Of a DNA stretch of 64,000 bases, positions 2,172-60,056 are shown piece by piece. Location: the sequence record OZ195776.1; one strand, given 5' to 3'. Below the pieces are notes generated by a model. The model was not told the DNA's origin, searched no databases, and worked only from the letters and a program-made list of their open reading frames with translations. The position numbers and the translations under genes are program-made. Within the stretch, counting starts at the first letter, position 1; the number at the start of each line of letters is the position of its first letter.

Positions 2172-2660
2172 TTATTTGTAAACGCGAGTAACGTTCTTTT
2201 CAACGAAATGTACGCTACCATCTTCGTAACAATCCAGGTACATGTGACCGATGTGATTGCCACACTCGCATTTGAGCTTTTCACCCATTGAATAGTTGCA
2301 ACAACCATGCCCACGTTTAAATGGAGGAATGATGCCATCGAAAATGGAACTTTGACCAACCACAATTTCAGATGCGCGTTTGCGAACGATTTGAGCAGGA
2401 CGGTCATCGCAATACTTGTTGTTCTCTTTCTTTTGACCTTGCGACATGTAGAACACACCACGTTTGAAAGAGCCCCACTCGTATCGCTCAAGGATGCCTT
2501 CGCTGACGCCATCTTGATCATCGTAGATTGGTTGGTCCTTGTTGTAAATCGCTCCGGGATTTAGAATGCGGTCGCTAAACCAACCAGGGAACCAATGCAC
2601 CTTTGCTTGGTACATATCAGATGTTAACGGTTTGCTGCACTTTGAACATTGAAGTTTCAT
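2172..2660 (-). CDS. Hypothetical Cys-rich (possible Zn-binding) protein
   Basis: CSKC, CECG and CC motifs; in-operon ORF. Confidence 0.5.
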   Translation of the reverse strand: MKLQCSKCSKPLTSDMYQAKVHWFPGWFSDRILNPGAIYNKDQPIYDDQDGVSEGILERYEWGSFKRGVFYMSQGQKKENNKYCDDRPAQIVRKRASEIVVGQSSIFDGIIPPFKRGHGCCNYSMGEKLKCECGNHIGHMYLDCYEDGSVHFVEKNVTRVYK

Positions 2661-3109
2661 GATTTCCCCTGTAGATGGTCGCGAATCTCAGTCAAACGAC
2701 CACAGAATTCACGTACGGTTAGCACAGTATCGCAAGTTTTCTTACGACCGATTGAGTGTTGTAGAGTTGCTTTGCCAGTTGCCAATAGAGCTTTCTGGAA
2801 CTTCGTATTCTCCGCTAACGCCGCGTACGCTTCGTCCAGTAGATTCTGGTACGCTTCACTATCGCGATGAATCGGACATCCTTTCCAGTACAAAGTCTGG
2901 TTCGTTTTCCAGTTTTTCTTTGCACCCTTGCTTTTGGCCTGCTTGCCAACAAGAGTGCAAATATGACGTTGCATATCAACTCCAGAAAACTTCAACGATT
3001 GGAGGAAGCCTTCCATTGAGTTGCATTCAACGCCATCCACCACGAAACGATATGGAGCGAAGTTAGACAAAGCAGACGCTGGATAACCATTGCCTGATTT
3101 AATGTCCAT
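2657..3109 (-). CDS. NADAR-family protein, T4 gp30.3-like
   Basis: LSNFAPYRFVVDGVECNSMEGFLQSLKF and KFQKALLATG motifs. Confidence 0.8.
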   Translation of the reverse strand: MDIKSGNGYPASALSNFAPYRFVVDGVECNSMEGFLQSLKFSGVDMQRHICTLVGKQAKSKGAKKNWKTNQTLYWKGCPIHRDSEAYQNLLDEAYAALAENTKFQKALLATGKATLQHSIGRKKTCDTVLTVREFCGRLTEIRDHLQGKS

Positions 3110-5292: not shown

Positions 5293-6021
5293 ATGAACTG
5301 CTACGTATACAGAATCACCAATGTAGTATCAAACCGACACTATTACGGATATCGTAAAAGCTCCACAAATCACCCAAATGATGATTTGGGCGTTGTATAT
5401 TTCAGCTCAAGCAGCGATAAGACCTTCATCGCCGAACAACGTGATTTTCCAACACACTTCAGATATAAAATAATTGCATGGGGACTAACACAAGAACGTG
5501 CTTTGATTCTTGAAGAAAAACTTCAACGAAGATTCCAAGTTGATGTCAATCCAGCTTTTTACAATCGTCGTATTATGAACGATAGATTTCATTGTAACAA
5601 AGAAACTGGACGTAAAATTGCTGCTAACAAATCAAGAGCTCGTAAAATATCAAAGACGCACAAACAACTATTCGCGAACGGAAAACGTACCAATTCAGGA
5701 AAATCCAATCCAAGATACGGTGACCACCGAACGTATGATGAGATTCACGGAGTCGGCAAATCAACCTCGTTAAAGTTGTCAATGTCACAATCGAGGACTG
5801 GAGCAGGCAACGCTAACGCAAAACGTTGGATAGCAATCGACCCCAATGGTAACGAGTATTGTATACGCGGAAATGTAAAGCAATTCTGTACAAATCATGG
5901 TTTGTGTATAAGGGCTCTCAAAACAAACCTCGGAAAGCCCTATTTGTCTAATCACACAAGAACTGACAAAGGTCGCAATACTATAGGATGGATGTTAATT
6001 AAGCTGCAACAATATCAATAA
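5293..6021 (+). mobile_element. Free-standing GIY-YIG (Seg-like) homing endonuclease
   Basis: N-terminal YVYRITN...HYYGYR; basic NUMOD-like C-terminus (GKSNPRYG, GAGNANAK); antisense to the surrounding operon. Confidence 0.8.
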
Positions 6022-7147
6022 CATCCAACTTTTGATACTTGTCGTTAATCATTGCTTGTTCGTAACCTTCAATTCCAAATAAGGTGTACGCTGGACAATG
6101 TTGACAACCAAGACCGTCGGTGTTTTTAACCATCATCTCACGAAATGCTACGGTCTTTGGATGCATCCAAACATCACGCACGAAATCATCCGCTTCTAAT
6201 ACGTTAATGCCTTCTGACCACCCACCAACATGCCATTCTTCTGTAAACGAACAAGGAAAAAAGATTCCTTTTTCCGATATATAGCTTGAGAATCGAGTAG
6301 ATTCACAAGGTTCAGACATCTGTACAAATTCATTGAATTTAGGATGATCTTTTACGCTTTGTAGAAACGCCCCTGCTGAACACGAATCAAATCCAAATTT
6401 TACATCATTGTCTAAGAACATTTGGACCATATCTTGATACGATTCTAGAGATGCAGTTTCGTGTTTGGTACCACGACCTTTTTGCTTCAATCCCAGACAA
6501 ACCAACGCGTTCATTCCCGCCAGACGCTCGTCTGTTTTAATATCAGATACAATCTGACCGACCGATTTAATGCTCTTTGCGCTAATCATAAAATGCGCAT
6601 TTACTTGCGTTAGGCCTGCGTCTGTCAATCGTTTGACGCTATTGTATCCAACATCCAATCCCGCATGTGGATAAAACGATACCGCCACAGCTCCACAAAC
6701 CGCTGCTAATTTCTTGGCAGTTTCTTCCGATACGTCAGCTACAGTGATGTTGGGAATAATTCCACGAGAACGAGCATATTCCATCATTTTGAAGATGTCT
6801 GGGTTTGCTTCACATTGAGCGTCAGCACCCAGTGCAACCTGCTGCAACCACGGCATTTTGTCAATGATGTTTTTAAATTCGTTAAACGACATGTTGTGTC
6901 CGTTTCGAGTGTTTGATTTGTAACAGAACGAACAGCCACGATTTGCCGGACCTGGACAAATTGTAGTTACCTCAATGTCCAAGATGTGAGGGAAATCGCA
7001 GTAATCAGGATAATCATCCACAGTCTCACCCCAAGTCATAGTACGACCGTTTTTCATGTTAAAATTGAAATTCACGTCTTTTGAACGAAATAGTTTCCAA
7101 TCGTCTTTAACAATCATTTTACCAGTTGGTGTTGGAATAGTTTTCAT
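5999..7147 (-). CDS. Radical SAM protein with C-terminal SPASM/Twitch-like region
   Basis: LDIEVTTICPGPANRGCSFCY cluster motif, QQVALG, PCES...GIFFPCSF...CQHCPAY; start MKTIP at 7147. Confidence 0.85.
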   Translation of the reverse strand: MKTIPTPTGKMIVKDDWKLFRSKDVNFNFNMKNGRTMTWGETVDDYPDYCDFPHILDIEVTTICPGPANRGCSFCYKSNTRNGHNMSFNEFKNIIDKMPWLQQVALGADAQCEANPDIFKMMEYARSRGIIPNITVADVSEETAKKLAAVCGAVAVSFYPHAGLDVGYNSVKRLTDAGLTQVNAHFMISAKSIKSVGQIVSDIKTDERLAGMNALVCLGLKQKGRGTKHETASLESYQDMVQMFLDNDVKFGFDSCSAGAFLQSVKDHPKFNEFVQMSEPCESTRFSSYISEKGIFFPCSFTEEWHVGGWSEGINVLEADDFVRDVWMHPKTVAFREMMVKNTDGLGCQHCPAYTLFGIEGYEQAMINDKYQKLDVIDIVAA

Positions 7148-7157
7148 TATGTTTTCC

Positions 7158-7364
7158 TCAGCGTTTAGCGATTTTAGTAGCGATTTTAGAGATAGACCAA
7201 GCATGTGCAGCAGTACAGAAACCGCCAACAACAGCGTTTGTGGGCCACAAGCCCAGACCAACCAATCCGTAGATTGAAGCGATTGTAACACCCAGACCAA
7301 TCAGTTGACAAAGTATGAATTTACCTTCTGCGATGAAAAAGGCTTTCACAAGATAATAACGCAT
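7158..7364 (-). CDS. Small membrane protein
   Basis: Hydrophobic ORF, AGGAG RBS before MRYYLV. Confidence 0.5.
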   Translation of the reverse strand: MRYYLVKAFFIAEGKFILCQLIGLGVTIASIYGLVGLGLWPTNAVVGGFCTAAHAWSISKIATKIAKR

Positions 7365-7898: not shown

Positions 7899-8384
7899 TT
7901 ATCCGAAAAACTTTGGATTAAATGCGAGATGTTGATTGCTGTAGCGGCCATCGGAAGTTACCTCAACACCCACCCAATCAGGCAGTGTAACGTCTTCTAA
8001 GCCGGTTTCTAACTCAACCTCAGCAGTTACAAGCCCTTCCAATTCGCCACGGTATACATCGACTTCCCACACAGTTCCTTCGTGGTTGATGTAATGACGA
8101 GTTTTCTCAATCTCAGCCATTGCCATCTTTTGAAGTGCACGAGCTTCGCCCAAGTAAAGAGGTTTCTCTACTTCGAGTCGACGTAGACCACCATCGTACG
8201 ATTTGCCTTTGATAGTCAATGTACCGAGATGGTCGTCTCCGGTAATCGCTTCGATACGAACTCGCACTGCACGCTCTGGGTCGTTTGTAAGGTACGCTTG
8301 CTCAATTTCAACGCTGTAATTGGCCAACTTGCTCCAGTCTACTGAGCGATCAGCGACTAGGAATTTACGTTCTATCTCGATCAT
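7899..8384 (-). CDS. CYTH-domain protein (triphosphate tunnel metalloenzyme)
   Basis: EIERKF, IEQAYL, VRVR, IEKTRH, WEVDVY, AEVEL motifs. Confidence 0.9.
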   Translation of the reverse strand: MIEIERKFLVADRSVDWSKLANYSVEIEQAYLTNDPERAVRVRIEAITGDDHLGTLTIKGKSYDGGLRRLEVEKPLYLGEARALQKMAMAEIEKTRHYINHEGTVWEVDVYRGELEGLVTAEVELETGLEDVTLPDWVGVEVTSDGRYSNQHLAFNPKFFG

Positions 8385-8564: not shown

Positions 8565-8963
8565 TTAGAACCTCTCGTATTCGTATTTGATACCAGCCGC
8601 GCCGAGTACTTCCGCGATTGGTGGATTTTGGTATGAATCGTCGTAACAGCCGCTCCACTCACGACGAGGAGTCAGATCTTTTTCTTCTGGATAATCGTCT
8701 ACCCATCCAGCCAGAAGTGCGATTTTGACTTTCTGCTCGTGGTCGAAACTTTCCCACATTTCGCGTTCATCATCGCAGCACCATACGAACTTATCGTCAT
8801 CGTAGTAACCACGACCGTAGTCGCTTAGGTAACGATAGATCTCGTTCTCAAATGGACTGATTATGCGTTCAGTGAACCAATTTGCGATTGATTCTGGTGG
8901 TTCTTGTGTAATAACGAAAGAAGACGAAGAACTGTTTGAAACAAAGCCGTTACGAATTTTCAT
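8565..8963 (-). CDS. FVSNSSSSSF-family protein 1
   Basis: N-terminus MKIRNGFVSNSSSSSFVIT. Confidence 0.75.
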   Translation of the reverse strand: MKIRNGFVSNSSSSSFVITQEPPESIANWFTERIISPFENEIYRYLSDYGRGYYDDDKFVWCCDDEREMWESFDHEQKVKIALLAGWVDDYPEEKDLTPRREWSGCYDDSYQNPPIAEVLGAAGIKYEYERF

Positions 8964-11004: not shown

Positions 11005-11166
11005 TCAGTCAATCTGCAGTAATTTGCGAATGTTGTTGTAAACGTTTTCAGAGAACACAAATAGCATTTGCTGTTGTGCTTTTTCGGTGTAATCCCAGTA
11101 CTTCACACCACCTAGTCCACAATCAATGGCCAGGTCGTAAGCTGGGTTGCCTTGTGGAAGTGACAT
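11005..11166 (-). CDS. Hypothetical protein (53 aa, not in track)
   Basis: MSLPQGNPAYDLAIDCG...; abuts the J-domain gene stop. Confidence 0.5.
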   Translation of the reverse strand: MSLPQGNPAYDLAIDCGLGGVKYWDYTEKAQQQMLFVFSENVYNNIRKLLQID

Positions 11167-11729
11167 TAGCGCACTCCCATCTCTCTTAGTTCGTAGTCGC
11201 GATACTCTTGCGTATTGGCAGCTACCGGTAAACCATCCACCATGTGAGGTGCTGAGGCAACCTGAGTTGGCCCACCAAATGAAACTGTTGGACGACCTAT
11301 GTTAAACAGAATAACACCAAAGAACATGATAAATCCAAATAGCACCATGCCCATGAACATACGATCTTTTTCACCTCGCATCTTGGCTTGGTCGTATTGA
11401 AGAAAACGGCATCGGTTGTGGTAATAAACCGTGGATGCTTGTTGTTCTCTCAATTGACGATTCAACTTAACAACGTGGGTCTCAAGCTCGTCGATGTAAT
11501 CATCTTCGTAACGATGAGTCTGCTTCGGTTGCTCTTGTTGGATAGCAGTTTGGCTATCGCGAGCTCCATTACCAGCAAGAATCTGCTCGTAAGAGTTCTT
11601 CAAAAGAACAAACAACGGACCAGAACCGTTTTTGTCTGGATGCAGTTTTGTGCTAAGTTGACGGTAACGTTTTTTAACTTCTGATCGAGTTGCGTTTGGT
11701 TCAACACCAAGTAGTTCAAAGTGATTCAT
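11166..11729 (-). CDS. J-domain (DnaJ-type) protein with C-terminal transmembrane helix
   Basis: FELLGV...KKRYRQLSTKLHPDK with the HPD motif; TM MFMGMVLFGFIMFFGVILF. Confidence 0.85.
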   Translation of the reverse strand: MNHFELLGVEPNATRSEVKKRYRQLSTKLHPDKNGSGPLFVLLKNSYEQILAGNGARDSQTAIQQEQPKQTHRYEDDYIDELETHVVKLNRQLREQQASTVYYHNRCRFLQYDQAKMRGEKDRMFMGMVLFGFIMFFGVILFNIGRPTVSFGGPTQVASAPHMVDGLPVAANTQEYRDYELREMGVR

Positions 11730-12714: not shown

Positions 12715-13233
12715 TTAACCACAATCGGTTCCATCAAATTCTGGGAATTGACCATTCAGTATGCGAATTGCCTGGTTTGAGTCGCGCTCAGTAAGTCCAG
12801 AAAATCCATTTACATGGACGAAATTGTCGCGTTGCCAGTAAAGCATATCGCTATCATCGTCCAAAATAACGTACGTATTGAAGTCGTAATGATACCCAAC
12901 AAGTTCTTCATTGTCTTTGATCCACTTGAGGATTTCATTACCACGGAACACGAACCCGTTGTTGTAGTCTTCGGTCATTCCGATGATTTCACCGTCAATG
13001 CCCATCAAACGACACATTTCTTTTAGCTCATCGAGCTCTGCACCAAGTCTCCACGTAGACGAGATCACAATCTTAGCGTCTGTGTGGTCGATGATACGAT
13101 TCAACAAGCGTACGTTACGGTCGCTGTAGAAGTACGAACTACGAATGTTCTTCGGGTCGTGCGAGATTGGATGATTTTCAGCGTCGATGGCGTTATTCAA
13201 AACGCCATCGATGTCCAAGAAGATAATTTTCAA
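12715..13233 (-). CDS. HAD-family phosphatase (HAD_SAK_2, RNA-repair type)
   Basis: IFLDIDGVLN, IVISSTWR, RGNEI, YVILDDDSDM. Confidence 0.85.
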   Translation of the reverse strand: MKIIFLDIDGVLNNAIDAENHPISHDPKNIRSSYFYSDRNVRLLNRIIDHTDAKIVISSTWRLGAELDELKEMCRLMGIDGEIIGMTEDYNNGFVFRGNEILKWIKDNEELVGYHYDFNTYVILDDDSDMLYWQRDNFVHVNGFSGLTERDSNQAIRILNGQFPEFDGTDCG

Positions 13234-14958: not shown

Positions 14959-15351
14959 TTAGCAGTACTCTGTACCGCCACCAACTGAGATTTGCTTGCC
15001 AGTATGTTCGGCAATCTTCGTCAGCATCTTGTGTTGCTCTTCAGTTACGAAACCGTTGATACAGTCGTTTACCGAGAAGTTTTCTGGATCGTCTTCTACG
15101 CCCAGAGTGAATTCGTTGCCCCACTCGTACGTTTTAATACGTAGACCAGCATCGCCGAATGCACCTTCAAGCATATCGCCAAGAGAGTACATGCAATCTG
15201 TTTCTTCCAGGTCTTCTTTGTTCTTGTCGTAGAACGTTGGATCAAGGTCTTTAACCGCACCAAGCAATTCTTCGCGGTTAGCGAAATCAATACCACAAAT
15301 TACGAAAGAGCTGCTTGAGCTGTTTGATACAAAACCTAAACGAATTTTCAT
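14959..15351 (-). CDS. FVSNSSSSSF-family protein 2
   Basis: MKIRLGFVSNSSSSSFVICG. Confidence 0.8.
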   Translation of the reverse strand: MKIRLGFVSNSSSSSFVICGIDFANREELLGAVKDLDPTFYDKNKEDLEETDCMYSLGDMLEGAFGDAGLRIKTYEWGNEFTLGVEDDPENFSVNDCINGFVTEEQHKMLTKIAEHTGKQISVGGGTEYC

Positions 15352-15723
15352 TTATTCACCATCTAAAATTGTTTTCACGCCAGGAGCGCTTGTTAAAAGA
15401 TCTACGACACCAGTTTCGCCGTATTCAAAAGAACCTTCGAGAACCACGTTCCCATTTTCGATTGCTTTGCGCATGTCGTCGTAACGCTCTTGCACCCAAT
15501 CTTCGTCAGCTAGGATCTCAGCGACGTCTTGCTTACCGCCCCAACCGTAGTGGTCAACAACCCACTTATCCAACTCTTCCATGTTAGTAATCGTGGTTTC
15601 GAATACACGATCTGGTTTGATCTTGACAGTAACTGTACCATCATCGTTCATTCCGTCACCAGGAAGACTGATGATGAAACTTGAACTTGAGCTGTTTGAA
15701 ACGAAGCCATTACGAATCTTCAT
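15352..15723 (-). CDS. FVSNSSSSSF-family protein 3
   Basis: MKIRNGFVSNSSSSSFIIS. Confidence 0.8.
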   Translation of the reverse strand: MKIRNGFVSNSSSSSFIISLPGDGMNDDGTVTVKIKPDRVFETTITNMEELDKWVVDHYGWGGKQDVAEILADEDWVQERYDDMRKAIENGNVVLEGSFEYGETGVVDLLTSAPGVKTILDGE

Positions 15724-16574: not shown

Positions 16575-17060
16575 TTACCCGTTGCGACCAGCACCGTATG
16601 AGTAATCAGATTTCGATGTAGCTGACATGAAATCGTTTATCATTTCTTGTTCAGATTCGTCGAAGAAGTCTTCGTCAATGTCGTAGTTCGGTTCAGCGTA
16701 CCAATAATCTTCTTCGTCTTCATCTTCGTCAGGCTCTGGAGTGAAGTAACTATCACCTTCACCACCGCCCCAAGACAAGATTGCAACTTTCGTGTCTGGA
16801 TTTTGGACCCACTGCTCGTGTAGGCCAGTAAACGATACTTCGTCGTATGTGAACGACTCTACTGATAGACGATCATTCTTTGGGTTGTAATTGTAGTTTG
16901 ACCACCAGCCGCGTTCTTTTTCCGGGCAGATGATGTCAGAAGCATCGACAATTTCGATGTCTTCGTGTTTGTTCAGTTTTTCCAAATCATCAACGATGCC
17001 AACACCGATGATGAAGCTCGAACTCGAGCTGTTTGAAACGAAACCATTACGTACTTTCAT
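16575..17060 (-). CDS. FVSNSSSSSF-family protein 4 (very acidic C-terminus)
   Basis: MKVRNGFVSNSSSSSFIIG from ATG 17060. Confidence 0.8.
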   Translation of the reverse strand: MKVRNGFVSNSSSSSFIIGVGIVDDLEKLNKHEDIEIVDASDIICPEKERGWWSNYNYNPKNDRLSVESFTYDEVSFTGLHEQWVQNPDTKVAILSWGGGEGDSYFTPEPDEDEDEEDYWYAEPNYDIDEDFFDESEQEMINDFMSATSKSDYSYGAGRNG

Positions 17061-17254
17061 TAAATCACCAAATAATATGCACCCAAGCAGATGCAAGCAA
17101 TAACAAATAAAGCAGCGAAGAATTTGAGCCAAGCGCTTGCTTCATTCCCACTCATGCTGCGGTACGTTCCGGAGAACGGACACGCAAGCACTTCAATTAG
17201 CGCCCACAGAAGGTATCCAATACCTCGGAGCACGAACTCGAACAAATCGTCCAT
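17060..17254 (-). CDS. Small membrane protein
   Basis: Hydrophobic; TAATG-coupled to both neighbours. Confidence 0.55.
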   Translation of the reverse strand: MDDLFEFVLRGIGYLLWALIEVLACPFSGTYRSMSGNEASAWLKFFAALFVIACICLGAYYLVI

Positions 17255-17655
17255 TAGTTGTACATCTCGCCGCCATCGACAGTGATGTCAAGGTCGATTA
17301 GATCAGAAATACGACGTAGTTCTTCGTATTGTTCGTCGGTTAAGAAACCGTTGCGACAGTCTTCGAGAGACATACTTTCTGGGTTTTTGAATTTACCCAA
17401 ATACATCGTGTCGCAGCATTCATCCAGAGATTCACATGAGATGCCTTCCGGAAGAACTTGGTCCATTAGATACGGAATTTCCCAATATTCATCATCAGCA
17501 ATGAGTTTTGTTACTTTGGATTCGATGGTTACGAACTTCTCACCAGCGATTTTGCGAACAGCGTCAACCAAGCTATCAACGTCGTTAAATTCGAAACCAG
17601 CAACGATGAACGAGCTACTTGAGCTGTTTGATACAAAACCTAAACGTACTTTCAT
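17254..17655 (-). CDS. FVSNSSSSSF-family protein 5
   Basis: MKVRLGFVSNSSSSSFIVAG from ATG 17655. Confidence 0.8.
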   Translation of the reverse strand: MKVRLGFVSNSSSSSFIVAGFEFNDVDSLVDAVRKIAGEKFVTIESKVTKLIADDEYWEIPYLMDQVLPEGISCESLDECCDTMYLGKFKNPESMSLEDCRNGFLTDEQYEELRRISDLIDLDITVDGGEMYN

Positions 17656-19261: not shown

Positions 19262-19606
19262 TTATGCAAAAAATAGCACATATGCTACCAACAAACTAAT
19301 CGTGTGGATTAGTTGGTCATACCCAATTACCTGGAAGAAACGACGTGTTTCACCACGTTTCCAGTAGTAGGCTGACACACGACTTGTAACAAAGTCGGTA
19401 ACAAAGTGCATTACACCGGTAAAGATTGCGAAATCAATACCGAAAATGACAAACGGCAATGCATACGTTGCGCAATGTCTAGCCAATGGCCAAATACTCT
19501 TGCTCTTGTTGAGAGCTTGGTGTTCTGTCTGAAACCAAAAATCTGCAACGTAGTGGATTGCGAAAATAAGGATCAGATGCAGAAACGCAGCAGGTGCGAT
19601 TAGCAT
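19262..19606 (-). CDS. DUF3307-family membrane protein
   Basis: HYVADFWFQT..QALNK, HFVTD, IGYDQLIH. Confidence 0.75.
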   Translation of the reverse strand: MLIAPAAFLHLILIFAIHYVADFWFQTEHQALNKSKSIWPLARHCATYALPFVIFGIDFAIFTGVMHFVTDFVTSRVSAYYWKRGETRRFFQVIGYDQLIHTISLLVAYVLFFA

Positions 19607-20073
19607 AATTCATCTCTCACTTTCATAATAGCTTGACCAAGCAAGTTTTGACCAAGCCACTGGCTCTTGTCGTACGCACGAGCGTCCGCTACACCCAGAC
19701 CAATGCCCCAAATGCGATCGTAAGGACTTGCCTCAACGAGCTCGCGCTTACCAGTCTTTTGCAGAATCTTGATTAGACGAGGATTCTGTGTGAATTTCAA
19801 CATGTTACCTTGGACAACAACATCGAAACGACGTGAACCCCAAAGCGCATCGTCGTATCCACGAACTTTACGGCCAAGCGCTTTTTGCGTTTTCGGATTG
19901 TTCGTTTTAAGAATCTGATCGGCGATTTCGTAGTCACCATGCACCGCAGCTTTGTGGTACATCATGTATTGCTCGGCAGTATTGAACGTAATGCCATCTT
20001 CCACGAAAGGACTCTCATACCATTGAGAGAACTCACCGCCCCAGAACATTACAAATTCGTCAGTGTATTTCAT
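19600..20073 (-). CDS. NADAR-family (YbiA-like) protein
   Basis: FSQWY, TAEQYMMYHKA, KALGRKV, LVEASPYDRIWGIG, GQNLLG. Confidence 0.92.
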   Translation of the reverse strand: MKYTDEFVMFWGGEFSQWYESPFVEDGITFNTAEQYMMYHKAAVHGDYEIADQILKTNNPKTQKALGRKVRGYDDALWGSRRFDVVVQGNMLKFTQNPRLIKILQKTGKRELVEASPYDRIWGIGLGVADARAYDKSQWLGQNLLGQAIMKVRDELC

Positions 20074-49168: not shown

Positions 49169-50119
49169 ATGAAATTTATGCCCGATGAGTTGTTGTGGGA
49201 ACAAAAGTACCGTCCACTTTCTATTGAAGACTGTGTATTGCCAAGTCGAGTTCGTAAAATGTTCGATACTATGATTGAACAGAAGTCGATTCCAAATATG
49301 CTGCTTTGTAGTTCTTCTCCAGGTACTGGTAAAACAACTGTAGCACGTGCTGTAATGAACGATCTTGGTTACGAAGTGTTGTTTGTCAATGCATCAAGTA
49401 ATCGCGGCGTATCGCTCGTACAACACGATTTACCAGCATTCTGCAGCAGCGTTTCAATGACAGGTAAACCAAAAGCTGTTATTCTGGATGAGGCTGATAA
49501 CCTTACTCCTGATGCACAAAAAGCGTTGCGTGGATTAATCGAGCAGTTCAGTAAGAACGTTCGTTTCATCTTGACTTGCAACTATGCGCAAAAGATTATC
49601 GATCCTATTCGTAGTCGTCTCCAAGAGTTCGAGTTTGTATACAGCAAGCACGAGCAACTGGAATGCATCAAGCAGATGATTATACGAAGTGCGAAAATCT
49701 GTAAGAACGAAAAGGTTGCCGTATCATCAGCAACGGTATTGAAAGAGCTTGTTAAGCGTAACTACCCAGACAACCGTAAAACAGTTGTTTCGTTGCAAAA
49801 CTACGCTCGTGGCGGTAAGATTGATGAAGGTATTCTATCGGAAATCATAGCAAATGATGATATCAGCGTTCTAATCGACGCGTTGAAGAGTAAAAACTTC
49901 AAAGTGATTCGCGATCTGATTCCAACATACGCTGGTGATGTTGCAGCGTTCCTGCATACTTTGTACAAGAAAGCGTATCTTGAGTTAGAACCAGAAAGTA
50001 TTCCAGATTTCATCGGAATCGTTGGTGAAACCAATAACAACGTTCACTCTTGTGTAGATACAGAAATTCTATTATCTTACGCATTGTGTCAAATCATGGT
50101 TGAATGTAACTTCCAATAA
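49169..50119 (+). CDS. 44: Clamp loader large subunit gp44
   Basis: LWEQKYRP, SPGTGKTT, ILDEAD, FILTCN, IRSR. Confidence 0.96.
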   Translation: MKFMPDELLWEQKYRPLSIEDCVLPSRVRKMFDTMIEQKSIPNMLLCSSSPGTGKTTVARAVMNDLGYEVLFVNASSNRGVSLVQHDLPAFCSSVSMTGKPKAVILDEADNLTPDAQKALRGLIEQFSKNVRFILTCNYAQKIIDPIRSRLQEFEFVYSKHEQLECIKQMIIRSAKICKNEKVAVSSATVLKELVKRNYPDNRKTVVSLQNYARGGKIDEGILSEIIANDDISVLIDALKSKNFKVIRDLIPTYAGDVAAFLHTLYKKAYLELEPESIPDFIGIVGETNNNVHSCVDTEILLSYALCQIMVECNFQ

Positions 50120-50127
50120 GGTGTTCA

Positions 50128-50622
50128 ATGGATATTTTTGAAATGGTGAGAGCCGGGCAGAAAGCCCAACTCGAGCAAGAAACGCGTGAAACTGAGCTCA
50201 AACAAGAGTTTGATGCGATGAAAGTGAAAAAGCTGTCACCTTTTGATTGGTTGAACAGCATCTATAACAAAGATCATATAATGACGCCGGAAAATGAAAA
50301 ACAATACAGCGCATTTATGGTTAATCGTGGTCTAAGCCAAAACGTTGATACAGTGGTGCACGCGTTTTATATGGACCAAATGAGCAAGTTGCCTTTGGAT
50401 ATGCAATACGATTACCTGTTTCACGCAGTACGTAAGGGACGTCGTCGTGGTGGATGGGCGAAAGCTCCTAAGCACGACGTTGATACCATTATGGAAGTGT
50501 TTCAAGTGAATCAGAATCAAGCATTGGCAATATCAGCTCGTTTAACAGACGAACAGCATGAACAACTAAACAACTGGTTTAATGATCGTGGTGGCGTTAC
50601 CCGTAAACGCCGTACTAAATAG
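50128..50622 (+). CDS. 62: Clamp loader small subunit gp62
   Basis: SPFDWLNSI, FMVNRGLSQ, QYDYL; synteny. Confidence 0.9.
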   Translation: MDIFEMVRAGQKAQLEQETRETELKQEFDAMKVKKLSPFDWLNSIYNKDHIMTPENEKQYSAFMVNRGLSQNVDTVVHAFYMDQMSKLPLDMQYDYLFHAVRKGRRRGGWAKAPKHDVDTIMEVFQVNQNQALAISARLTDEQHEQLNNWFNDRGGVTRKRRTK

Positions 50623-50649
50623 CGGGTAACTACAACATGGAACAGTGAA

Positions 50650-51033
50650 ATGAATGAGATTATTAACAAACTAGAGATCCACCTGCCGGACGAGGACGCG
50701 TTTCTGAAGATTCGTGAAACGCTAACCCGTATTGGTATCGCTAATAACAAGACTAAGACGCTGCATCAGTCGTGTCATATTCTTCAAAAGCGTGGCCATT
50801 ACTACCTTGTGCATTTCAAAGAACTTCTGGCTCTGGATGGTCGTTGTGTGGAAATGTCTGCCGAAGACATTGAGCGTCGAAACAACATCGCGAAACTATT
50901 GGAAGATTGGGGTCTATGCTCAGTTGCTAACCCAGTAGATCACGAGTTTACCGGCGACAACAAGTTCCGAATTATTTCGTATCGTGACTCCAAAGAATGG
51001 ACATTGCGTTACAAGTACAAAATCGGCGCTTAA
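50650..51033 (+). CDS. regA: Translational repressor RegA
   Basis: FLKIRETLTRIGIAN, CHILQKRG.YY.VHFKELL. Confidence 0.96.
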   Translation: MNEIINKLEIHLPDEDAFLKIRETLTRIGIANNKTKTLHQSCHILQKRGHYYLVHFKELLALDGRCVEMSAEDIERRNNIAKLLEDWGLCSVANPVDHEFTGDNKFRIISYRDSKEWTLRYKYKIGA

Positions 51034-51038
51034 CTGAT

Positions 51039-51058
51039 ATGGGCTCTACGGAGCCCAT
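51039..51058 (+). other. cUACGg tetraloop hairpin after regA
   Basis: ATGGGCTC-TACG-GAGCCCAT; only a short T run follows. Confidence 0.6.
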
Positions 51059-51075
51059 TAGACGAGAATATTATT

Positions 51076-51582
51076 ATGGACAACTCAACATTTCTTGAAT
51101 ACCTTAAAATCGGTGGCGATTTTGAGAATGCTGTACTACCTCTTCTGTTTGAATACTTTTCAAAGATTGACGAAGAAGTAGCAATCCTACCCCTTGCAAA
51201 CAGCAAGGATAATCCTGAACAAGGACGTGGTCAAGTGTGGATAAACGCTAATGGTACCACTCACGCAGTTCCGGATTTCATCGTGCGCTGTCACGATTAC
51301 CTATTCCTTATCGACGCCAAGTCGAAAAACTTCTGGTTCGAAGACCGATTCGGTTATATCGACCAGCACAAAGTCAAAGATGACTACATTCCAAGTTTAA
51401 AAAAATTCAAAGCAGATGCTGTACTATATGTGTTCGGTAATCGTAAGACGGGCGAAGTGTATCTGACAAAGACACGCGGAGAATCTTTGCACATCAGTTC
51501 TATGGCAAACGCTAAGAACCAAGGCAAGTTCCTTGGATGGGACATCAACGATCAAATCTTTATCGGCAAAGCTGATTGGTAA
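51076..51582 (+). CDS. PD-(D/E)xK-like nuclease
   Basis: VPDFIV...LIDAKSK. Confidence 0.55.
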   Translation: MDNSTFLEYLKIGGDFENAVLPLLFEYFSKIDEEVAILPLANSKDNPEQGRGQVWINANGTTHAVPDFIVRCHDYLFLIDAKSKNFWFEDRFGYIDQHKVKDDYIPSLKKFKADAVLYVFGNRKTGEVYLTKTRGESLHISSMANAKNQGKFLGWDINDQIFIGKADW

Positions 51583-51585
51583 TCG

Positions 51586-51614
51586 TTGTATCGAATAAGC
51601 AATTCCTGTATAAT
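51586..51614 (+). promoter_or_regulatory. Promoter for gene 43
   Basis: TTGTAT-N17-TATAAT. Confidence 0.65.
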
Positions 51615-51646
51615 TTTAGATTCATGTGAGTAAATTGAGGAGCATC

Positions 51647-54223
51647 ATGTTTTACCTTTCTGTAGATAAAATCGGCAACCGTCTTTTAGAACGTTACATT
51701 GACGTTGACGGTGTTGAAAAGAGTCGAGAAATCGATTACACACCAACCTTATTCTTACCAACCATTCACGACAGTCCATATAAAGATATTTTTGGTCAAG
51801 CACAGCTTCCTAAGATGTTTGACACAATGCGAGACGCTGATGACTATATTCGTCTAGCGAAGGATCGTGGAGCAACAATTAATGGTATGGAAGACTACGT
51901 TCTTGCATACATCTCGGATCGTTACGTGAATCGTGAGTTCGATATGAGCAAGATTCGTGTAGCAAATATCGATATCGAGACGCCGTCTATTGAGTTTCCA
52001 AACGCAATTGAGGCGAAATACGAGATTACATCGATTGGTCACCACGATAGCATCAAAGACAAGTACTTCGTGTGGGGCATTCCTACAAACGAAGAATGGT
52101 CAAAAGAAAAGTCGGAACTAGATCCAGCATTACTTGAAAAAGTTGAGTACATTCGTTGTACGTCTGAAAAAGAGCTGTTGATTCGTTACCTTCAATTCTG
52201 GCGCCAATTCACACCAGCAGTCGTTACTGGCTGGAACATCGAAACGTTCGATTTACCGTACATTGTCAATCGTATGGAGAAGGTTCTCGGTAAAAAAGTA
52301 ACCCAAACATTAAGTCCTTGGAATAAAGTGAATAAACGCACTATTACCAACGACTATGGTCAAGAATCGATGAAGATCAACATTGTAGGTGTTGCGGAAC
52401 TCGATTACCTTCAACTGTACAAGAAATTCACGTTCATCACTCGTCCATCATACAAGTTGGATTATGTTGGTGAAGTGGAAGTTGGTCAGAAAAAAGTTGA
52501 GTTCGAGCAAGCTAACTACTTGGAATTCTACAAGCAAGACTACAAAAACTTCATTGACTACCAAATTCAGGATGTTCAGTTGGTTAATCGTATCGATACC
52601 AAACTAATGCTCTTGAACCTAGCATTCAGCATTTCTTACTACGCAGGTATCAACTTTACAAGCGTGTTCGGAACGTTGAAGCCGTGGGATGCAATCATCT
52701 TCAATAGCTTGAAGAAAGATAAGAAAGTCGTCCCAATGTCTAAGCACCAAGAATCTGCAAGTTTCATGGGTGCATTCGTTAAAGCTCCGCAGGTGGGATT
52801 CCATAAATCGATTGGCTCTTTTGACTTAACATCACTATATCCGTCAATCATTCGTGAATGTAACATCTCGCCTGAGACAATTGTGAGACAGTATGACTAC
52901 GTTGGTCAGTTAGCTGATCGTGTGGATTTACTAGTTGGAATGGAAATCGGCGTTCCTGATGATGGCAATAGCCACTCAGCGAATGGTATGTGCTACCGTA
53001 AAGATATCCGTGGAGTAATCCCAGTTGAAATCGAGAAAGTGTTTTTCGAACGTAAGGCGAACAAGAAGAAGTCGTTTGAGCACCAACAAAACGCGTTGGA
53101 TGCACAAGCAGAACTAAAAGATCGTGGTAAGTTTGATAAATTTGATGGGTTATCCGTTGAAGATATAAACGCTTACTACAAAGAGAGCAACAGTTTAGCG
53201 ACTCAATTCGATGTCCAGCAAATGGCTCGTAAGATCTTGATCAACTCGCTTTATGGAGCTCAAGGCCATCACATGTTCCGTTATTACGATCTGCGTAATG
53301 CAGAAGCGGTAACATCGTACGGTCAACTTGCAATCAAATGGGTTTCACGTGACGTGAACGTTTGGATGAACAAGATGTGTGGTACGGAAGATGTCGACTA
53401 TGTCGTATACACCGATACTGACTCAATCTATGTTGGATTCGAAACGCTGATGAACAAACTTGGCATGTACAAGTTGGAAGGCGACGCGTTCACTGACAAA
53501 TTCTCTATGATCTGTGAAAAGATCGAGACAAACGTGATTAACCCTTCGTACCAACATCTTCATGAATACATGAACACATACGAGCGTCAGATGTTTATGG
53601 ACCGAGAGGTTCTTGCAAACACAGGCTTCTTTATCGCTAAGAAGCGTTATGCGCTGGATGTTCAAGACAACGAGGGCATTCGTAAGCCTAAGTTGAAAAT
53701 CATGGGTATTGAAACGCAACGAAGCAGCACGCCACCATTGGCTCAGAAGGGCTTGAAAGAATCGATTCGTTTGATTCTTCAACAAGGTGAAGATGCAATG
53801 CAGGCGTACGTGAAAGATTTCCGTGATGATTTCATGAAGGCTGAATATCAGCAAATCAGTTTCGTATCGAGTGCGAATAACATGGGCAAATACAGCAATG
53901 TAGATGGAACACCTGGTAAAGGTTGTCCTGGTCATGTTAAAGCAGCTCTTTACTACAACAAAATCGCCAAAGACCTTGGGTTTAATCCAATCGAAGAAGG
54001 CGATAAGATTGCTGTCGTGTTCTTAGATCGAAACGAATACGGAATTGACCGTATTGCGTATCCTTCTGGTGGCAAACTTCCACGTGAGCTGAATCATATT
54101 GTTTCAGCAGTAGACCGTAGACGTTTGTACGATGACAAGTTCATCGCACCGCTGAACAAAATCTGTGATGCAATTAAATGGGAACACAAAAAGTCCAACA
54201 ACCTTAGCGCGTTCTTTGGTTAA
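51647..54223 (+). CDS. 43: Family B DNA polymerase gp43
   Basis: [32 protein letters not shown]; uninterrupted. Confidence 0.98.
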
Positions 54224-54231
54224 GACCTGGA

Positions 54232-54264
54232 AATATGCTGGTATAATGCCAGCATATTCTTTTT
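54232..54264 (+). terminator. Terminator-like hairpin with TATAAT in the loop
   Basis: AATATGCTGG-TATAATG-CCAGCATATT-CTTTTT. Confidence 0.6.
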
Positions 54265-54276
54265 GAGGAACAGATA

Positions 54277-54582
54277 ATGAATGAAGCAGATGATCCAAAC
54301 AAATGTTTCCACCATACAGTAGGTGGAGCCCAAGTCGGTGATTCCAGTGTTTGTCGTGACCATTTTCCGGATCAAGGGCAATACGTTTTTACCGGCAATC
54401 TAAATACGTTACCGATTTCGTACAATGTTGATGTTAACATCAAAGATGTGGCAATCGAAGGTGATAAATTGGTAGTGGTGATGGGCTCGGAAGTAGCAAC
54501 GACATCAACGCCAGATACTCGCATTCGTCTGCCTATGAAACAGGTACGTGAAATCGCACAAGTAATACTACAAACAATTTAA
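54277..54582 (+). CDS. Hypothetical protein
   Basis: GAGG RBS. Confidence 0.55.
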   Translation: MNEADDPNKCFHHTVGGAQVGDSSVCRDHFPDQGQYVFTGNLNTLPISYNVDVNIKDVAIEGDKLVVVMGSEVATTSTPDTRIRLPMKQVREIAQVILQTI

Positions 54583-54608
54583 GCAAATTTAAGAAATAGA
54601 GGTGACTG

Positions 54609-55685
54609 ATGTCTTTAATGGACCGTATGAAAAAGAGCTCTACCAGTGGCTACGCAAAAGTTTTGTCTAACTCAGAACTAATGCACAAAAAAGACCAAGT
54701 TCGAACCAGTATTCCTGCGTTGAACTTAGCGTTATCTGGTGAAATTGATGGTGGTTTAACAAGTGGCATTACGCTATTTGCTGGCCCGTCAAAACACTTT
54801 AAAACGCTGTTAGGTTGGATTACCGTTCGTTCGTTTTTGAACAAATACGACGATGGTGTCTGCGTGTTCCTGGATACAGAATTCGGTACCACTCCAGACT
54901 ATCTAAAATCACAGGGCATTGACCCTGACCGCGTACTGCACATTCAATGTGAGAACGTGGAACAGATGAAGTTTGAACTTGCTAACCAGCTAGAAGAGGT
55001 TAAGCGTGAAGACCGCGTTATTTTCTTCATCGACTCGGTTGGTAACGTGGCGTCTAAGAAAGAAGTCGAAGATGCACAAAACCAAAAATCTGTTGCTGAT
55101 ATGTCTCGTGCGAAACAGCTAAAAAGCATGTTCCGTATTGCAACTCCATATTGTACAACTCGCGATCTTCCTATTGTGGCAATCAACCACACATACGAAA
55201 CGCAAGAGATGTTCAGTAAAACAGTAATGTCTGGCGGTACTGGTCCAATGTACTCGGCAGATACAGTTATCATTCTTGGTAAACAGCAAGAAAAAGATGG
55301 CAAAGAATTAGTTGGCTACAACTTCATCATGAACATCGAGAAAAGCCGTTACGTGAAAGAGAAATCAAAGATTCCTCTACAAGTTACGTACGAAAAAGGC
55401 GTAAACGTGTTCTCTGGTCTAATGGACATTGCACTTGACTTAGGTTGGGTACATAAGCCAAACAACCGTTCATACCAAGTTGTGCTTGGTTACGATGAAG
55501 AAACCGGTGAAATGCTTTTAGACGAGAAGAAGTGGTATCGTAAAGATACAGACTGCGCAATGTTCTGGAAGCCATTGATTACTAATCCAGAATTCCGTGA
55601 AGCAGTTAAAGGTCACTTCTCGCTTGGTCAAATCGACTGTGAAGCGTTAGAAGCGGAAGCTGCTGAGTTATTCGAAGAAATGTAA
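54609..55685 (+). CDS. uvsX: RecA-like recombinase UvsX
   Basis: AGPSKHFKT, FLDTEFG, IDSVGN, VMSGGTG.MYSAD. Confidence 0.97.
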   Translation: MSLMDRMKKSSTSGYAKVLSNSELMHKKDQVRTSIPALNLALSGEIDGGLTSGITLFAGPSKHFKTLLGWITVRSFLNKYDDGVCVFLDTEFGTTPDYLKSQGIDPDRVLHIQCENVEQMKFELANQLEEVKREDRVIFFIDSVGNVASKKEVEDAQNQKSVADMSRAKQLKSMFRIATPYCTTRDLPIVAINHTYETQEMFSKTVMSGGTGPMYSADTVIILGKQQEKDGKELVGYNFIMNIEKSRYVKEKSKIPLQVTYEKGVNVFSGLMDIALDLGWVHKPNNRSYQVVLGYDEETGEMLLDEKKWYRKDTDCAMFWKPLITNPEFREAVKGHFSLGQIDCEALEAEAAELFEEM

Positions 55686-57371: not shown

Positions 57372-57635
57372 ATGATAGAAATAGTTGGTTCAAAATACTG
57401 TGGCGCTTGCGGAGAATACAAGCGTCGTCTCGAAAGAGATGGATTCGAATACAAGTGGTACGACACGTTAAATCCTTGCGAACGCGGCAACGAATTAGTT
57501 GAATTGGCTGCAGATGATGGGTACGAAAACATACCACTAGTATTTTACAAAAATGAGTGTATCGGTTCTGGAATCGGTACGTACAATAGACTATTGCAAC
57601 ATAAGGGAATTCTACCAGATGAAGTCATCTATTAA
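57372..57635 (+). CDS. Glutaredoxin-like (NrdH-type) protein
   Basis: CGAC, IPLVFYKNECIG; next to nrdD. Confidence 0.75.
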   Translation: MIEIVGSKYCGACGEYKRRLERDGFEYKWYDTLNPCERGNELVELAADDGYENIPLVFYKNECIGSGIGTYNRLLQHKGILPDEVIY

Positions 57636-59472
57636 GCAACTGGTATACGGCGACACTGAAATTAACGAAAACGCCAACAAAGATAGCAAATTGATCCCAA
57701 CAATGCGTGACTTAACTGCCGGTATTGTTTCGAAAGACCTTGCATTGAATGACATTCTGCCAAAGCATATTGCAGAAGCACATATCTCTGGCGACCTCCA
57801 TTTCCACGACTTGGATTACAGTCCACTTTACCCAATGTTCAACTGCATGTTGATTGACGTTAAAGGTATGTTGGAAAACGGATTCAAGCTGGGCAATGCT
57901 GACATTGAAACGCCTAAGAGCATTCATACCGCAGCAACAATCACATCACAAATCATCCAACAAGTTGCATCGCACATTTACGGTGGTAACTCAATCGGTC
58001 GCATTGATGAAGTACTTGCTCCTTACGTTCGCAAATCATACCACAAGGCACTTGAACGTGGTCGTCAGTGGACAGAAAGCGAAGCAAAAGCAGCAATTTT
58101 CGCTCGTGAAACTGTAGCAAAAGAAACGTACGATGCGTTCCAAACTCTAGAATACCAGACGAATAGCATGCAGACTACAAATGGTCAGACGCCATTCACT
58201 ACGCTTAATTTCGGTCTTGGTACAAGCTGGGAAGAACGCCTAATTCAAGAAAGCATTTTGAAAGTGCGTATCGCTGGTCTTGGCAAAGAACGCAAAACAG
58301 CAATCTTTCCTAAACTGGTATTCACGCTAAAAGACGGTGTAAACCTGAAAGAAGGTGATCCGAACTACGCGATTAAACAACTCGCGCTAGAATGTGCATC
58401 GAAACGTATGTACCCAGATATTCTATGTTATGATCGTCTGGTAGAGCGCACCGGATCGTTTAAGCCACCAATGGGATGTCGTAGTTTCCTAAACGTTTGG
58501 GAAAATGAAGAAGGCGAACAAATCCACGATGGTCGTAACAACCTCGGAGTGGTTTCGGTAAACATTCCGCGTATTGCTATTGAAGCTGGTGGCGATCCGA
58601 ACAAATTTTTCAGTCTACTAGATGACCGTTGTCAAGTAGCATTTGAAGCACTACAACTTCGTATTGAACGTTTCCGTGGCGTTAAAGCATCAGTTGCTCC
58701 GATCCTGTACTGTGAAGGTGCAATGGGCACTCGTCTTGATCCAGATGATGATGTAATGGAACTGTTTGAAGATGGTCGCGCAAGTATCTCGTTGGGCTAC
58801 ATTGGTCTACATGAAGCTGTAACGTACCTGGACAAGCAAAACCCAGAACACACGTTTGATAGCAAGCGTAAGCAAGACTACGCAAAAGGCATCGTGAAAA
58901 TCCTAAGCGATTACACGAAGAAGTGGAAAGAAGAGACTGGCTTTGCATACAGCTTGTACTCAACTCCATCTGAGTCACTTTGTGATCGTTTCTGTCGCCT
59001 TGATCGTGAGAAGTTTGGTGTTATTGAAGGCGTGAACGACAAAGAGTACTACACTAACTCGTTCCACTTGGACGTATTCAAGCACGTTGATCCGTTTGGT
59101 AAGATTGATTTCGAAGCAGAATACTCTCAGTGGGCATCTGGCGGTTTCATCAGTTACGTAGAGTTCCCTAACATGCAGCACAACCTCAAAGGGCTTGAGC
59201 GCGTTTGGGATTACGCTTACACCAAATTACCATACTTCGGTACGAATACTCCAATTGACCATTGTGGCAGTTGTGGTTGGTCTGGTGAAGCTGATTGTAC
59301 ATCAACTGGTTTTGTGTGTCCTTCGTGTGGAGAAACAAAGCCAACAAAATTGTCTGTCACTCGCAGAACGTGCGGCTATCTAGGAAATCCATCAGCGCGT
59401 GGATGGAACCGTGGCAAGACCGTAGAAATGCAAAATCGCGTTAAGCACTATGAACCATCAGCGGGTCTATAA
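57619..59472 (+). CDS. nrdD: Anaerobic ribonucleotide reductase
   Basis: HFHDLDY, MGCRSF, GRNNLGVVSVN, YYTNSFH, RRTCGYLG glycyl-radical motif. Confidence 0.97.
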   Translation: MKSSIKQLVYGDTEINENANKDSKLIPTMRDLTAGIVSKDLALNDILPKHIAEAHISGDLHFHDLDYSPLYPMFNCMLIDVKGMLENGFKLGNADIETPKSIHTAATITSQIIQQVASHIYGGNSIGRIDEVLAPYVRKSYHKALERGRQWTESEAKAAIFARETVAKETYDAFQTLEYQTNSMQTTNGQTPFTTLNFGLGTSWEERLIQESILKVRIAGLGKERKTAIFPKLVFTLKDGVNLKEGDPNYAIKQLALECASKRMYPDILCYDRLVERTGSFKPPMGCRSFLNVWENEEGEQIHDGRNNLGVVSVNIPRIAIEAGGDPNKFFSLLDDRCQVAFEALQLRIERFRGVKASVAPILYCEGAMGTRLDPDDDVMELFEDGRASISLGYIGLHEAVTYLDKQNPEHTFDSKRKQDYAKGIVKILSDYTKKWKEETGFAYSLYSTPSESLCDRFCRLDREKFGVIEGVNDKEYYTNSFHLDVFKHVDPFGKIDFEAEYSQWASGGFISYVEFPNMQHNLKGLERVWDYAYTKLPYFGTNTPIDHCGSCGWSGEADCTSTGFVCPSCGETKPTKLSVTRRTCGYLGNPSARGWNRGKTVEMQNRVKHYEPSAGL

Positions 59473-59606: not shown

Positions 59607-60056
59607 ATGAACTATCACAAAATCATCAAGCATGATTTTCAAAACGGAGAAGGGTGCAGAGTTACTCTCTTCGTTTCTGGGTGTATTCACGCCTGTGACG
59701 GTTGCTACAACAAGAGCACTTGGAACCCGAAATCTGGTTCACCTTTCACAGAAAACGTGTTAGAATCGATTTTAGATGCGTTAGATTTCCACGATGGATT
59801 GTCACTGTCTGGTGGAGATCCGATGCACCATAGAAACAGAGATGAGATACACAAGCTCTGTAAAGCGGTTAAGGAACGATATCCAGATAAAGACATTTGG
59901 ATGTGGTCTGGTTATCGTTTTGAAGATCTCAAAGATGAGCCTGTAATGGCTTATGTCGATGTCCTAATCGATGGAAAATACGAGAAGGACAACACGTCGC
60001 TATTACCTTGGAGAGGTAGCGATAATCAACGTCTAATCAAAGTGAAAGAATTATGA
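59607..60056 (+). CDS. nrdG: Anaerobic RNR activating enzyme
   Basis: FVSGCIHACDGCYN, LSGGDP, VLIDGKY, WRGSDNQ. Confidence 0.97.
   Translation: MNYHKIIKHDFQNGEGCRVTLFVSGCIHACDGCYNKSTWNPKSGSPFTENVLESILDALDFHDGLSLSGGDPMHHRNRDEIHKLCKAVKERYPDKDIWMWSGYRFEDLKDEPVMAYVDVLIDGKYEKDNTSLLPWRGSDNQRLIKVKEL

Follow-up and report, generated by a model that had tools for sequence, protein, structure and literature searches.

A phage radical SAM enzyme and a conserved N-terminal tag co-occur and co-vary, pointing to a virus-specific protein-modification system

Vibrio phage D479 is a KVP40/T4-type myovirus that originates from seawater and oysters. The window analyzed here is a stretch of 64,000 nucleotides, bases 62001-126000 of its genome (OZ195776.1, 257,764 bp), which encodes a radical S-adenosylmethionine (SAM) enzyme of 382 residues and, on the same strand, five small acidic proteins that share a serine-rich N-terminal sequence of 16 residues, hereafter called the tag. 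The enzyme and the tag co-occur in phages, and the variants of the tag follow the clade of the enzyme that accompanies them. Enzyme and tag set together point to an undescribed, virus-specific protein-modification system. We lean toward a reading in which one radical SAM enzyme recognizes and modifies the N-terminal tag, and thereby matures the entire tagged set of a genome. Neither family databases nor the searchable literature, tag strings included, yielded a description of this system.

The five tag-bearing genes lie on the minus strand of the window, as does the enzyme gene (5999-7147), and start with MK[IV]R[NL]GFVSNSSSSSF. An earlier note on this DNA had proposed the enzyme as a maturase of five FVSNSSSSSF proteins on its strand, and all five were confirmed there. 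Protein 1 (8565-8963; 132 residues, isoelectric point (pI) 4.4; tag codons 8916-8963) has a body, i.e., the part that follows the tag, which forms a singleton family. Protein 2 (14959-15351; 130 residues, pI 4.3; tag codons 15304-15351) has a body paralogous to that of protein 5 (17254-17655; 133 residues, pI 4.1; tag codons 17608-17655). Between them are protein 3 (15352-15723; 123 residues, pI 4.3; tag codons 15676-15723) and protein 4 (16575-17060; 161 residues, pI 4.05; tag codons 17013-17060). A degenerate DNA pattern for the tag has five matches in the window, exactly these genes, whereas 0.00 were expected from 100 shuffles, which rules out a chance origin. Each of the five starts is preceded by a Shine-Dalgarno-like GGTG/AGGA element. 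A scan of the remaining D479 genome, covering all but bases 50001-54999, found no further tag genes.

Co-occurrence of enzyme and tag, which the earlier note had named as a check on its proposal, proved to be strong in both directions and in two collections. On the enzyme side, 80 viral contig loci (36-57% identity) were scanned for NSSSxS[FYW] over 10 kb on either side of the gene. The tag is present in 68 of the 80, with 265 copies (1-13 per locus), all of them on the enzyme's strand and nearly all starting at Met-1. Eight of the 12 loci with no tag nearby belong to RB43/KP15-type T4-like phages, and the tag genes of RB43, RB16, and one related contig are located about 20 kb away from the enzyme. 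The RB43 genes are ORF116c and ORF121c for the tag and ORF169c for the enzyme, all three annotated as "hypothetical protein." Homologs of ORF116c occur in 174 phage records, the genus spectrum of which matches that of the 173 non-Vibrio records of the enzyme. Starting from the tag, a DNA pattern that described it and nothing else gave 120 listed stretches with a mean length of 7.9 kb; among the matches listed, the enzyme is found on 45 of the 120 stretches, and approximately 29 more are on contigs whose enzyme was found elsewhere (by contig name).

Across 185,579 species genomes the enzyme was found in only 17 loci, 13 of which also carry tag genes. Almost all of these loci are contigs of metagenome-assembled genomes and probably represent binned phage DNA. 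The only isolate genome with the enzyme (54% identity) is that of Flagellimonas marina (L203; NZ_JBHSCL010000010.1, a contig of 178,077 bp). This contig matches an RB43/KP15-type phage genome in size and, like those phages, has no tag within 10 kb; it is probably a phage contig in the assembly. The enzyme-tag system is essentially phage-only. When the same-strand open reading frames (ORFs) of 81 loci were clustered, tag-bearing families were the only ones conserved beside the enzyme; no third conserved partner, such as a protease, a transporter, or a protein with the recognition element (RRE) of peptides that are made on ribosomes and modified after translation (RiPPs), was found in these loci. 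The related Vibrio phage D480 contains neither the enzyme nor the tag in the 250 of its 253.7 kb that were scanned, in contrast to D479 with its one enzyme and five tags.

The tag also varies together with the enzyme. A serine to threonine substitution at position 9 (S9T) was found in 13 loci, in every tag copy of each, and variants are thus concerted within genomes. All four of the S9T loci that include an enzyme (L105, L118, L133, and L192) encode a divergent enzyme type, which is about 30% identical to the main clade and has the motif CX7CX6C. From this followed the prediction that T9 tags would be found wherever the divergent enzyme occurs, which was then checked and held: in 42 loci fetched via the divergent enzyme, T9 is present in 96 of 96 tags. 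A divergent sub-clade at 63-69% identity has D6 as well as T9 in every copy, and the sister enzymes of loci L077 and L190 pair with tags that have S6 and A9. The divergent clade (the four loci above and L220-L261) has a fuller SPASM cysteine block, CX2CX3CXCX3C, and a comparison of the two sequence types suggests that the main enzyme clade may have lost auxiliary-cluster cysteines.

A maximum-likelihood tree was built from enzyme sequences dereplicated at 90% identity, which left 72 representatives. On this tree the states of the tag require four changes, which is the minimum possible, against a mean of 10.8 for shuffled states, and none of 200 shuffles was as low. Furthermore, the same body families bear S9, T9, D6/T9, or S6/A9 tags, in each case matching the enzyme clade of the genome. 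Among the families that switch in this manner are one of zinc-ribbon type and that of window protein 3, which recurs in 11 loci and carries D6/T9 tags in the divergent enzyme clade. Since the same bodies carry clade-dependent tags, the tag state follows the enzyme and not the body. Co-occurrence, the presence of both parts in RB43-type phages as opposed to neither in D480, and this co-variation all favor the earlier proposal that the enzyme is a maturase of the serine-rich family, and we infer from them that the enzyme physically recognizes the tag and has it as a substrate.

The same observations bear on an explanation in which the tag is a sorting or turnover signal (for capsid packaging, proteolysis, or export) that serves machinery other than the enzyme, the two parts being inherited together only because they ride on one mobile cassette. 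In T4-type phages, hypervariable internal proteins are known to begin with a short stretch of conserved sequence. The tag likewise sits at the exact N-terminus and its genes are located in plastic early regions, as such a signal would have it. However, no gene family other than the enzyme is conserved alongside the tags, across diverse phage types with genomes of 24 to 460 kb, the tag variants track the enzyme clade, and the RB43 parts, though 20 kb apart, are both kept in 174 genomes. The tag also lacks a hydrophobic stretch for export. The capsid-targeting sequence of the T4 internal proteins differs from the tag in sequence and is read by the scaffold and the prohead protease, with no radical SAM enzyme involved, whereas the present tag reaches far beyond T4-like phages and tracks a radical SAM clade. 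We therefore assign only a small probability to a sorting or turnover signal. A signal peptide or lipobox appears unlikely, as no hydrophobic stretch follows the tag and the bodies are acidic and appear to be soluble.

The tag consensus, derived from 217 distinct N-termini, is M1 K2 x R4 x G6 F7 V8 S9 N10 S11 S12 S13 S14 S15 F16 [IVC]17 [IVL]18. N10 is located at position 10 in 263 of 273 tag copies. When the pattern was anchored so as to leave the residues in question free, N10 and S11 were each found in 292 of 292 copies and S12 in 289 of 292; with a second anchor, R4 was found in 216 of 217. Positions 9, 13, and 14 accept threonine, alanine, or cysteine, while threonine and alanine are absent or nearly so at S11, S12, and S15. 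AGY and TCN codons are mixed at every serine of the tag and the other positions use synonymous codons freely. The mixture of serine codons indicates that selection acts on the protein, and together with the free use of synonymous codons it rules out a DNA repeat, a recombination site, or a translational element as the identity of the tag.

The consensus also disposes of the idea that the enzyme is an activase which places a glycyl radical on G6 of the tag. The likeness of K-I-R-x-G-F to RVxG[FWY], with a glycine before an aromatic residue and after an arginine, is superficial, and the arginine of the tag is out of register with the known motif. G6 is replaced by aspartate in every tag of one sub-clade and by serine in others, which excludes it as a glycyl-radical site. 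In addition, the tagged bodies are not 10-stranded glycyl-radical barrels, and the enzyme is not of the PflA/NrdG type, so that the probability of this explanation is practically nil. The phage NrdG is a separate gene, as the earlier note had said; it encodes 149 residues with a CX3CX2C motif (59607-60056) and adjoins NrdD (57553-59472). D479 has two other radical SAM genes outside the window (record positions 157380-158381 and 173070-174116), which are 31% identical to each other and unrelated to the window enzyme; homologously annotated counterparts of these two are present in D480.

In contrast to the tag, the bodies are diverse. BLAST sorts the bodies of 219 proteins into about 82 clusters, and at least a dozen body families recur across loci, including the zinc-ribbon type and a type that terminates in YGAGRNG. 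The tagged proteins have a median length of 134 residues (5th-95th percentile 86-221), and their bodies are strongly acidic, with a median pI of 4.46; 84% of these are below pI 5, compared with 21% of neighboring ORFs. No family for them was found in Pfam, NCBIfam, or PADLOC, and in PHROGs there is only a weak match to phrog_7397, over the tag, with function unknown. Searches with tblastn using whole tagged paralogs gave no match outside D479, because the bodies diverge and the serine run is masked. On the other hand, a tag profile of 30 columns finds 24,426 representatives (E <= 0.001) among 1.84 billion proteins clustered at 50% identity, and in nearly all of the 150 hits listed the match begins at residue 1. 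Some database proteins (P0209-P0217) contain two tags, the second of which is internal and follows a methionine; in these, gene calling has probably joined two neighboring tag genes, possibly from phages with reassigned stop codons.

Several body families have conserved extreme C-termini of their own, which end in GAGR[ND]G, GGGY[DN]G, G[TS]x[YS][CN], [IE]S[HNM]H, or NDN[YH]. These were seen in families of loci L002-L081 and in window proteins 4, 2, and 5 (16575-17060, 14959-15351, and 17254-17655, respectively); the family of protein 4 is the one that ends in YGAGRNG. A second functional site, or proximity of the N- and C-termini, is possible.

An AlphaFold (AF2) model of protein 4 has a mean pLDDT of 89.8, and residues 1-10 average a pLDDT of 53. 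Residues 1-12 are modeled as coil, and S13-F16 of the tag start strand beta-1 of the body. The first strand (residues 13-23) and the C-terminal strand (residues 148-159) are the two longest strands of the model. Thus the tag, the most conserved part of the protein, is predicted to form an exposed N-terminal tail over its first 12 residues or so, and a low-confidence tail on a confident body is typical of a linear motif that would need a partner. A comparison of the modeled body with the PDB and BFVD by Foldseek gave nothing below E = 0.27, and neither the body profile nor the tag peptide drew a meaningful match when searched against PDB sequences.

An exposed, low-confidence tail would equally suit a docking peptide. 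In this alternative, the tag is a docking handle, and the tagged proteins are interchangeable adaptors or regulators that bind the enzyme via the tail and steer or modulate its radical chemistry on targets elsewhere (host proteins, nucleic acids, or metabolites, for example). Such a handle explains the co-occurrence, the shared tag on diverse bodies, and the co-variation just as well as modification of the tag does. However, the invariance of the hydroxyl residues S11, S12, and S15 looks more chemical than purely steric, the 1-13 adaptors of a genome would each need a target of their own, and we know of no radical SAM enzymes with exchangeable targeting subunits. We consider a docking handle unlikely.

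The enzyme itself begins with MKTIPTP in the ORF used here; the GenBank start of the gene is at window position 7204, 57 nt (19 codons) upstream. The string CPGPANRGCSFC, to which the earlier note had drawn attention, is present in the enzyme and holds C64, C72, and C75. The positions of these residues give the radical SAM [4Fe-4S] cluster motif C64-x7-C72-x2-C75 (codons at 6923-6958, minus strand), so that the spacing is CX7CX2C, and the CX6CX2C read earlier was a miscount. The length of the cluster loop differs among homologs, from CX3CX2C to CX12CX2C. The C-terminal cysteines in PCES (C281), PCSF (C299), and CQHC (C348 and C351) were all as reported. They form a candidate auxiliary-cluster region (codons at 6095-6307, minus strand), in which C281-x12-G294-x4-C299 corresponds to the CX9-15GX4C signature of SPASM/twitch domains and is located after the barrel; C256 (6380-6382, minus strand) lies just upstream of this region. 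Alignments of 22 and 67 homologs show that C64, C72, C256, C281, C299, and C351 are invariant and that C75 and G294 are at least 90% conserved. Within C348-x2-C351 only C351 is invariant, which brings the total to four invariant C-terminal cysteines, enough for one cluster. The full seven-cysteine SPASM set (CX2CX5CX3C and a distal cysteine, for two auxiliary clusters) is not present in the window enzyme. With CX9-15GX4C followed by only a CX2C, the enzyme has the cysteines for a single auxiliary cluster and is thus twitch-like and not a full SPASM protein.

Profile searches place the enzyme near these families at low scores. Pfam Radical_SAM (PF04055) matches below its gathering score (16.4 bits vs. 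a cutoff of 29.5, E = 0.011), as does Pfam SPASM (PF13186; 13.2 bits vs. a cutoff of 21.5, E = 0.11), the latter over the entire model (1-67 of 67) at enzyme residues 281-352. Precomputed annotation assigns PF04055 to a few homologs and PF13186 to several. In NCBIfam there are only weak, partial matches far below cutoffs (W-cofactor maturase, NirJ1, an N-terminal twitch family, and SkfB), and PADLOC gave no match for the enzyme. It belongs to phrog_7293 at 1e-145, which is annotated as of unknown function. In a collection of 5.8 billion proteins, 1656 homologs were found at E <= 0.001, nearly all of them on metagenomic contigs, which reach 437 kb in length; the handful with a name are labeled "radical SAM protein with SPASM domain."

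The AF2 model of the enzyme is confident (pLDDT 93.1, pTM 0.90). Residues 1-50 are modeled as an all-beta N-terminal extension with five beta-strands and no helix, residues 55-253 as alternating beta/alpha elements that form a partial (beta/alpha)6 TIM barrel, and the C-terminal domain as a hairpin and a helix, with the beta-hairpin at 287-297. The top Foldseek neighbors in the PDB are all radical SAM enzymes, namely TigE, HydE, EpeE, PqqE, BtrN, DesII, and NifB, with E-values of 1e-8 to 1e-5 and about 10% identity (TM 0.50/0.60 for PqqE). BtrN is also the sole PDB sequence match to the enzyme family profile, a weak one (E = 0.039) over the auxiliary-cluster region. No RRE was found in the enzyme: it has no PqqD/RRE Pfam match, and the N-terminal extension is modeled without a helix. 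Since its neighbors are only about 10% identical and the profile matches only BtrN, and that weakly, the enzyme is a distinct family inside the SPASM/twitch group, without an RRE. Of the earlier assignment as a radical SAM/SPASM-type enzyme, the radical SAM fold is borne out by the model and by Foldseek, while the full SPASM domain gives way to a truncated, twitch-like one.

Several of these neighbors (HydE, BtrN, DesII, and NifB) act on small molecules, and the enzyme has no RRE, both of which would fit a shared pathway without contact between the parts. The enzyme would then produce or convert a small compound (a nucleotide, a sugar, or a cofactor, for instance) that the tagged proteins bind or use via their serine-rich loop; a loop of this kind after a beta-strand could bind phosphate or another ligand. 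The bodies, on the other hand, belong to at least 82 unrelated families with no common fold signal and no Pfam or structural match, and in the protein 4 model the tail lies outside the packed fold. Clade-specific variants that are common to all paralogs of a genome are also hard to explain by one small ligand. A shared pathway of this type appears quite improbable to us.

If the tag is instead modified by the enzyme, as we favor, several characterized systems offer partial precedents. The anaerobic sulfatase-maturating enzymes (anSME/AtsB) belong to the SPASM/twitch group and act on full-length proteins and not on peptides. Their target is a serine or cysteine within a short motif that is conserved, many paralogous substrates share one enzyme, and their serine-to-aldehyde chemistry would suit the strictly invariant serines of the tag. 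The analogy drawn earlier with these enzymes nevertheless fails as family membership: the window enzyme has no anSME family match by hidden Markov model (HMM), the anSME substrate motif C/S-x-P/A-x-R is not in the tag consensus, and there are four or five C-terminal cysteines compared with the seven-cysteine, two-cluster SPASM domain of anSME. Moreover, the tagged substrates are not sulfatases, and the present system is essentially confined to phages.

The RiPP maturases (PqqE, TigE, and EpeE/YydG, along with the multi-substrate logic of the prochlorosins) are similar in that a conserved N-terminal recognition sequence precedes a hypervariable remainder, several substrate genes lie beside one enzyme gene on one strand, and the enzyme is co-localized and co-diversifies with the recognition sequence; TigE, EpeE, and PqqE are also among the best structural neighbors. 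They differ from the window enzyme, which has no RRE/PqqD-like domain and an all-beta region at residues 1-50. The tagged substrates are folded acidic proteins of 90-220 residues, in which the tag continues into beta-1, and not short precursors. No protease or exporter is conserved near the phage enzyme, and the invariant part is the tag itself and not a downstream core.

BtrN likewise has one auxiliary cluster, which follows a hairpin of the CX9-15GX4C type, and carries out an alcohol-to-carbonyl oxidation. However, its substrate is a small-molecule aminoglycoside, it is only about 11% identical to the phage enzyme (TM-scores 0.34/0.49), and the phage enzyme adds the N-terminal beta domain and the invariant C256. 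QhpD is a SPASM radical SAM enzyme that modifies a dedicated small protein, QhpC, which is encoded nearby. Unlike the proposed system, QhpD makes thioethers to cysteine, of which the tag has no conserved copy, and it serves one substrate and not a multi-family repertoire. It was matched in none of the searches made here.

The proposed mechanism is a two-part phage module, comprising a twitch-like radical SAM enzyme and a repertoire of small acidic proteins with a common 16-residue tag. The first 12 or so residues of the tag would form the exposed N-terminal tail, which the enzyme would bind and thread to its SAM/[4Fe-4S] site. A 5'-deoxyadenosyl radical could then take a hydrogen from N10, S11, S12, or S15. 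These are the likeliest modification sites because they never vary, with threonine and alanine absent or nearly absent, whereas position 9 (S, T, or A) probably makes a contact for recognition. A two-electron oxidation (-2 Da) could convert a serine to formylglycine or form a crosslink within the tag. This chemistry is a guess held with low confidence, and was chosen because BtrN and anSME, which are twitch/SPASM enzymes of such architecture, are dehydrogenases.

Several points weigh against the modification of all tagged proteins by one enzyme. The evidence consists entirely of genomic data and predictions. An RRE is absent from the enzyme, as is any above-threshold HMM match to a characterized maturase. 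S13-F16 begin the first beta-strand of the body, and as the end of the tag runs into this strand, the tag is not a detachable leader. With only about three to four independent tag changes, common descent of a cassette could account for part of the co-variation. Among the listed tag stretches, 46 of the 120 are not linked to the enzyme (these are fragmentary contigs), so that tags in enzyme-free genomes are possible. Finally, the conserved extreme C-termini of several body families are not explained by a modification of the tag.

The surroundings of the genes in the window include several other features. The 3' end of the radical SAM gene overlaps by 23 nt with a convergent gene (5293-6021, plus strand) that the record annotates as a GIY-YIG-like homing endonuclease and that has no Pfam match at 1e-3. 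A homing endonuclease is likewise located beside the enzyme homolog in several Klebsiella phages, and in three phages (leB, IME-CF2, and Kpn35c1) the match to the enzyme gene is split in two. Between the enzyme and the first tag gene is a CYTH-domain protein of the triphosphate tunnel metalloenzyme fold (7899-8384, minus strand; E = 1.8e-12), the gene for which is not conserved beside the enzyme in other loci. The same early region, also on the minus strand, encodes a Phage_30_3 protein (2657-3109), a J-domain protein (11166-11729), a HAD_SAK_2 phosphatase (12715-13233), and a NADAR domain (19600-20073; 4e-52).

It is plausible that the tagged proteins are early host-takeover or anti-defense effectors. 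We give even odds to a broader, virus-wide reading, in which the single radical SAM enzyme of each phage modifies the universal tag on a fast-evolving effector repertoire with dozens of unrelated folds. An aldehyde, a crosslink, or the like would thereby be installed, which the effectors would need in order to act on the host, and the modification would define a new viral, RiPP-like class at the level of proteins. If the proposed system is real, it would represent a previously unknown, phage-only form of radical SAM protein modification, and a very large portion of viral "dark matter" (the 24,426 clusters found by the tag profile) would gain a biochemical handle in common. Tagged proteins are present in well-studied isolates such as RB43, RB16, KP15, and Miro, in all of which they are annotated as hypothetical. 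The 16-residue tag with its clade variants (S9; T9; D6 and T9) would be a ready-made orthogonal enzyme-tag pair for protein engineering, and the activity of the tagged effectors may hinge on an oxygen-sensitive chemistry.

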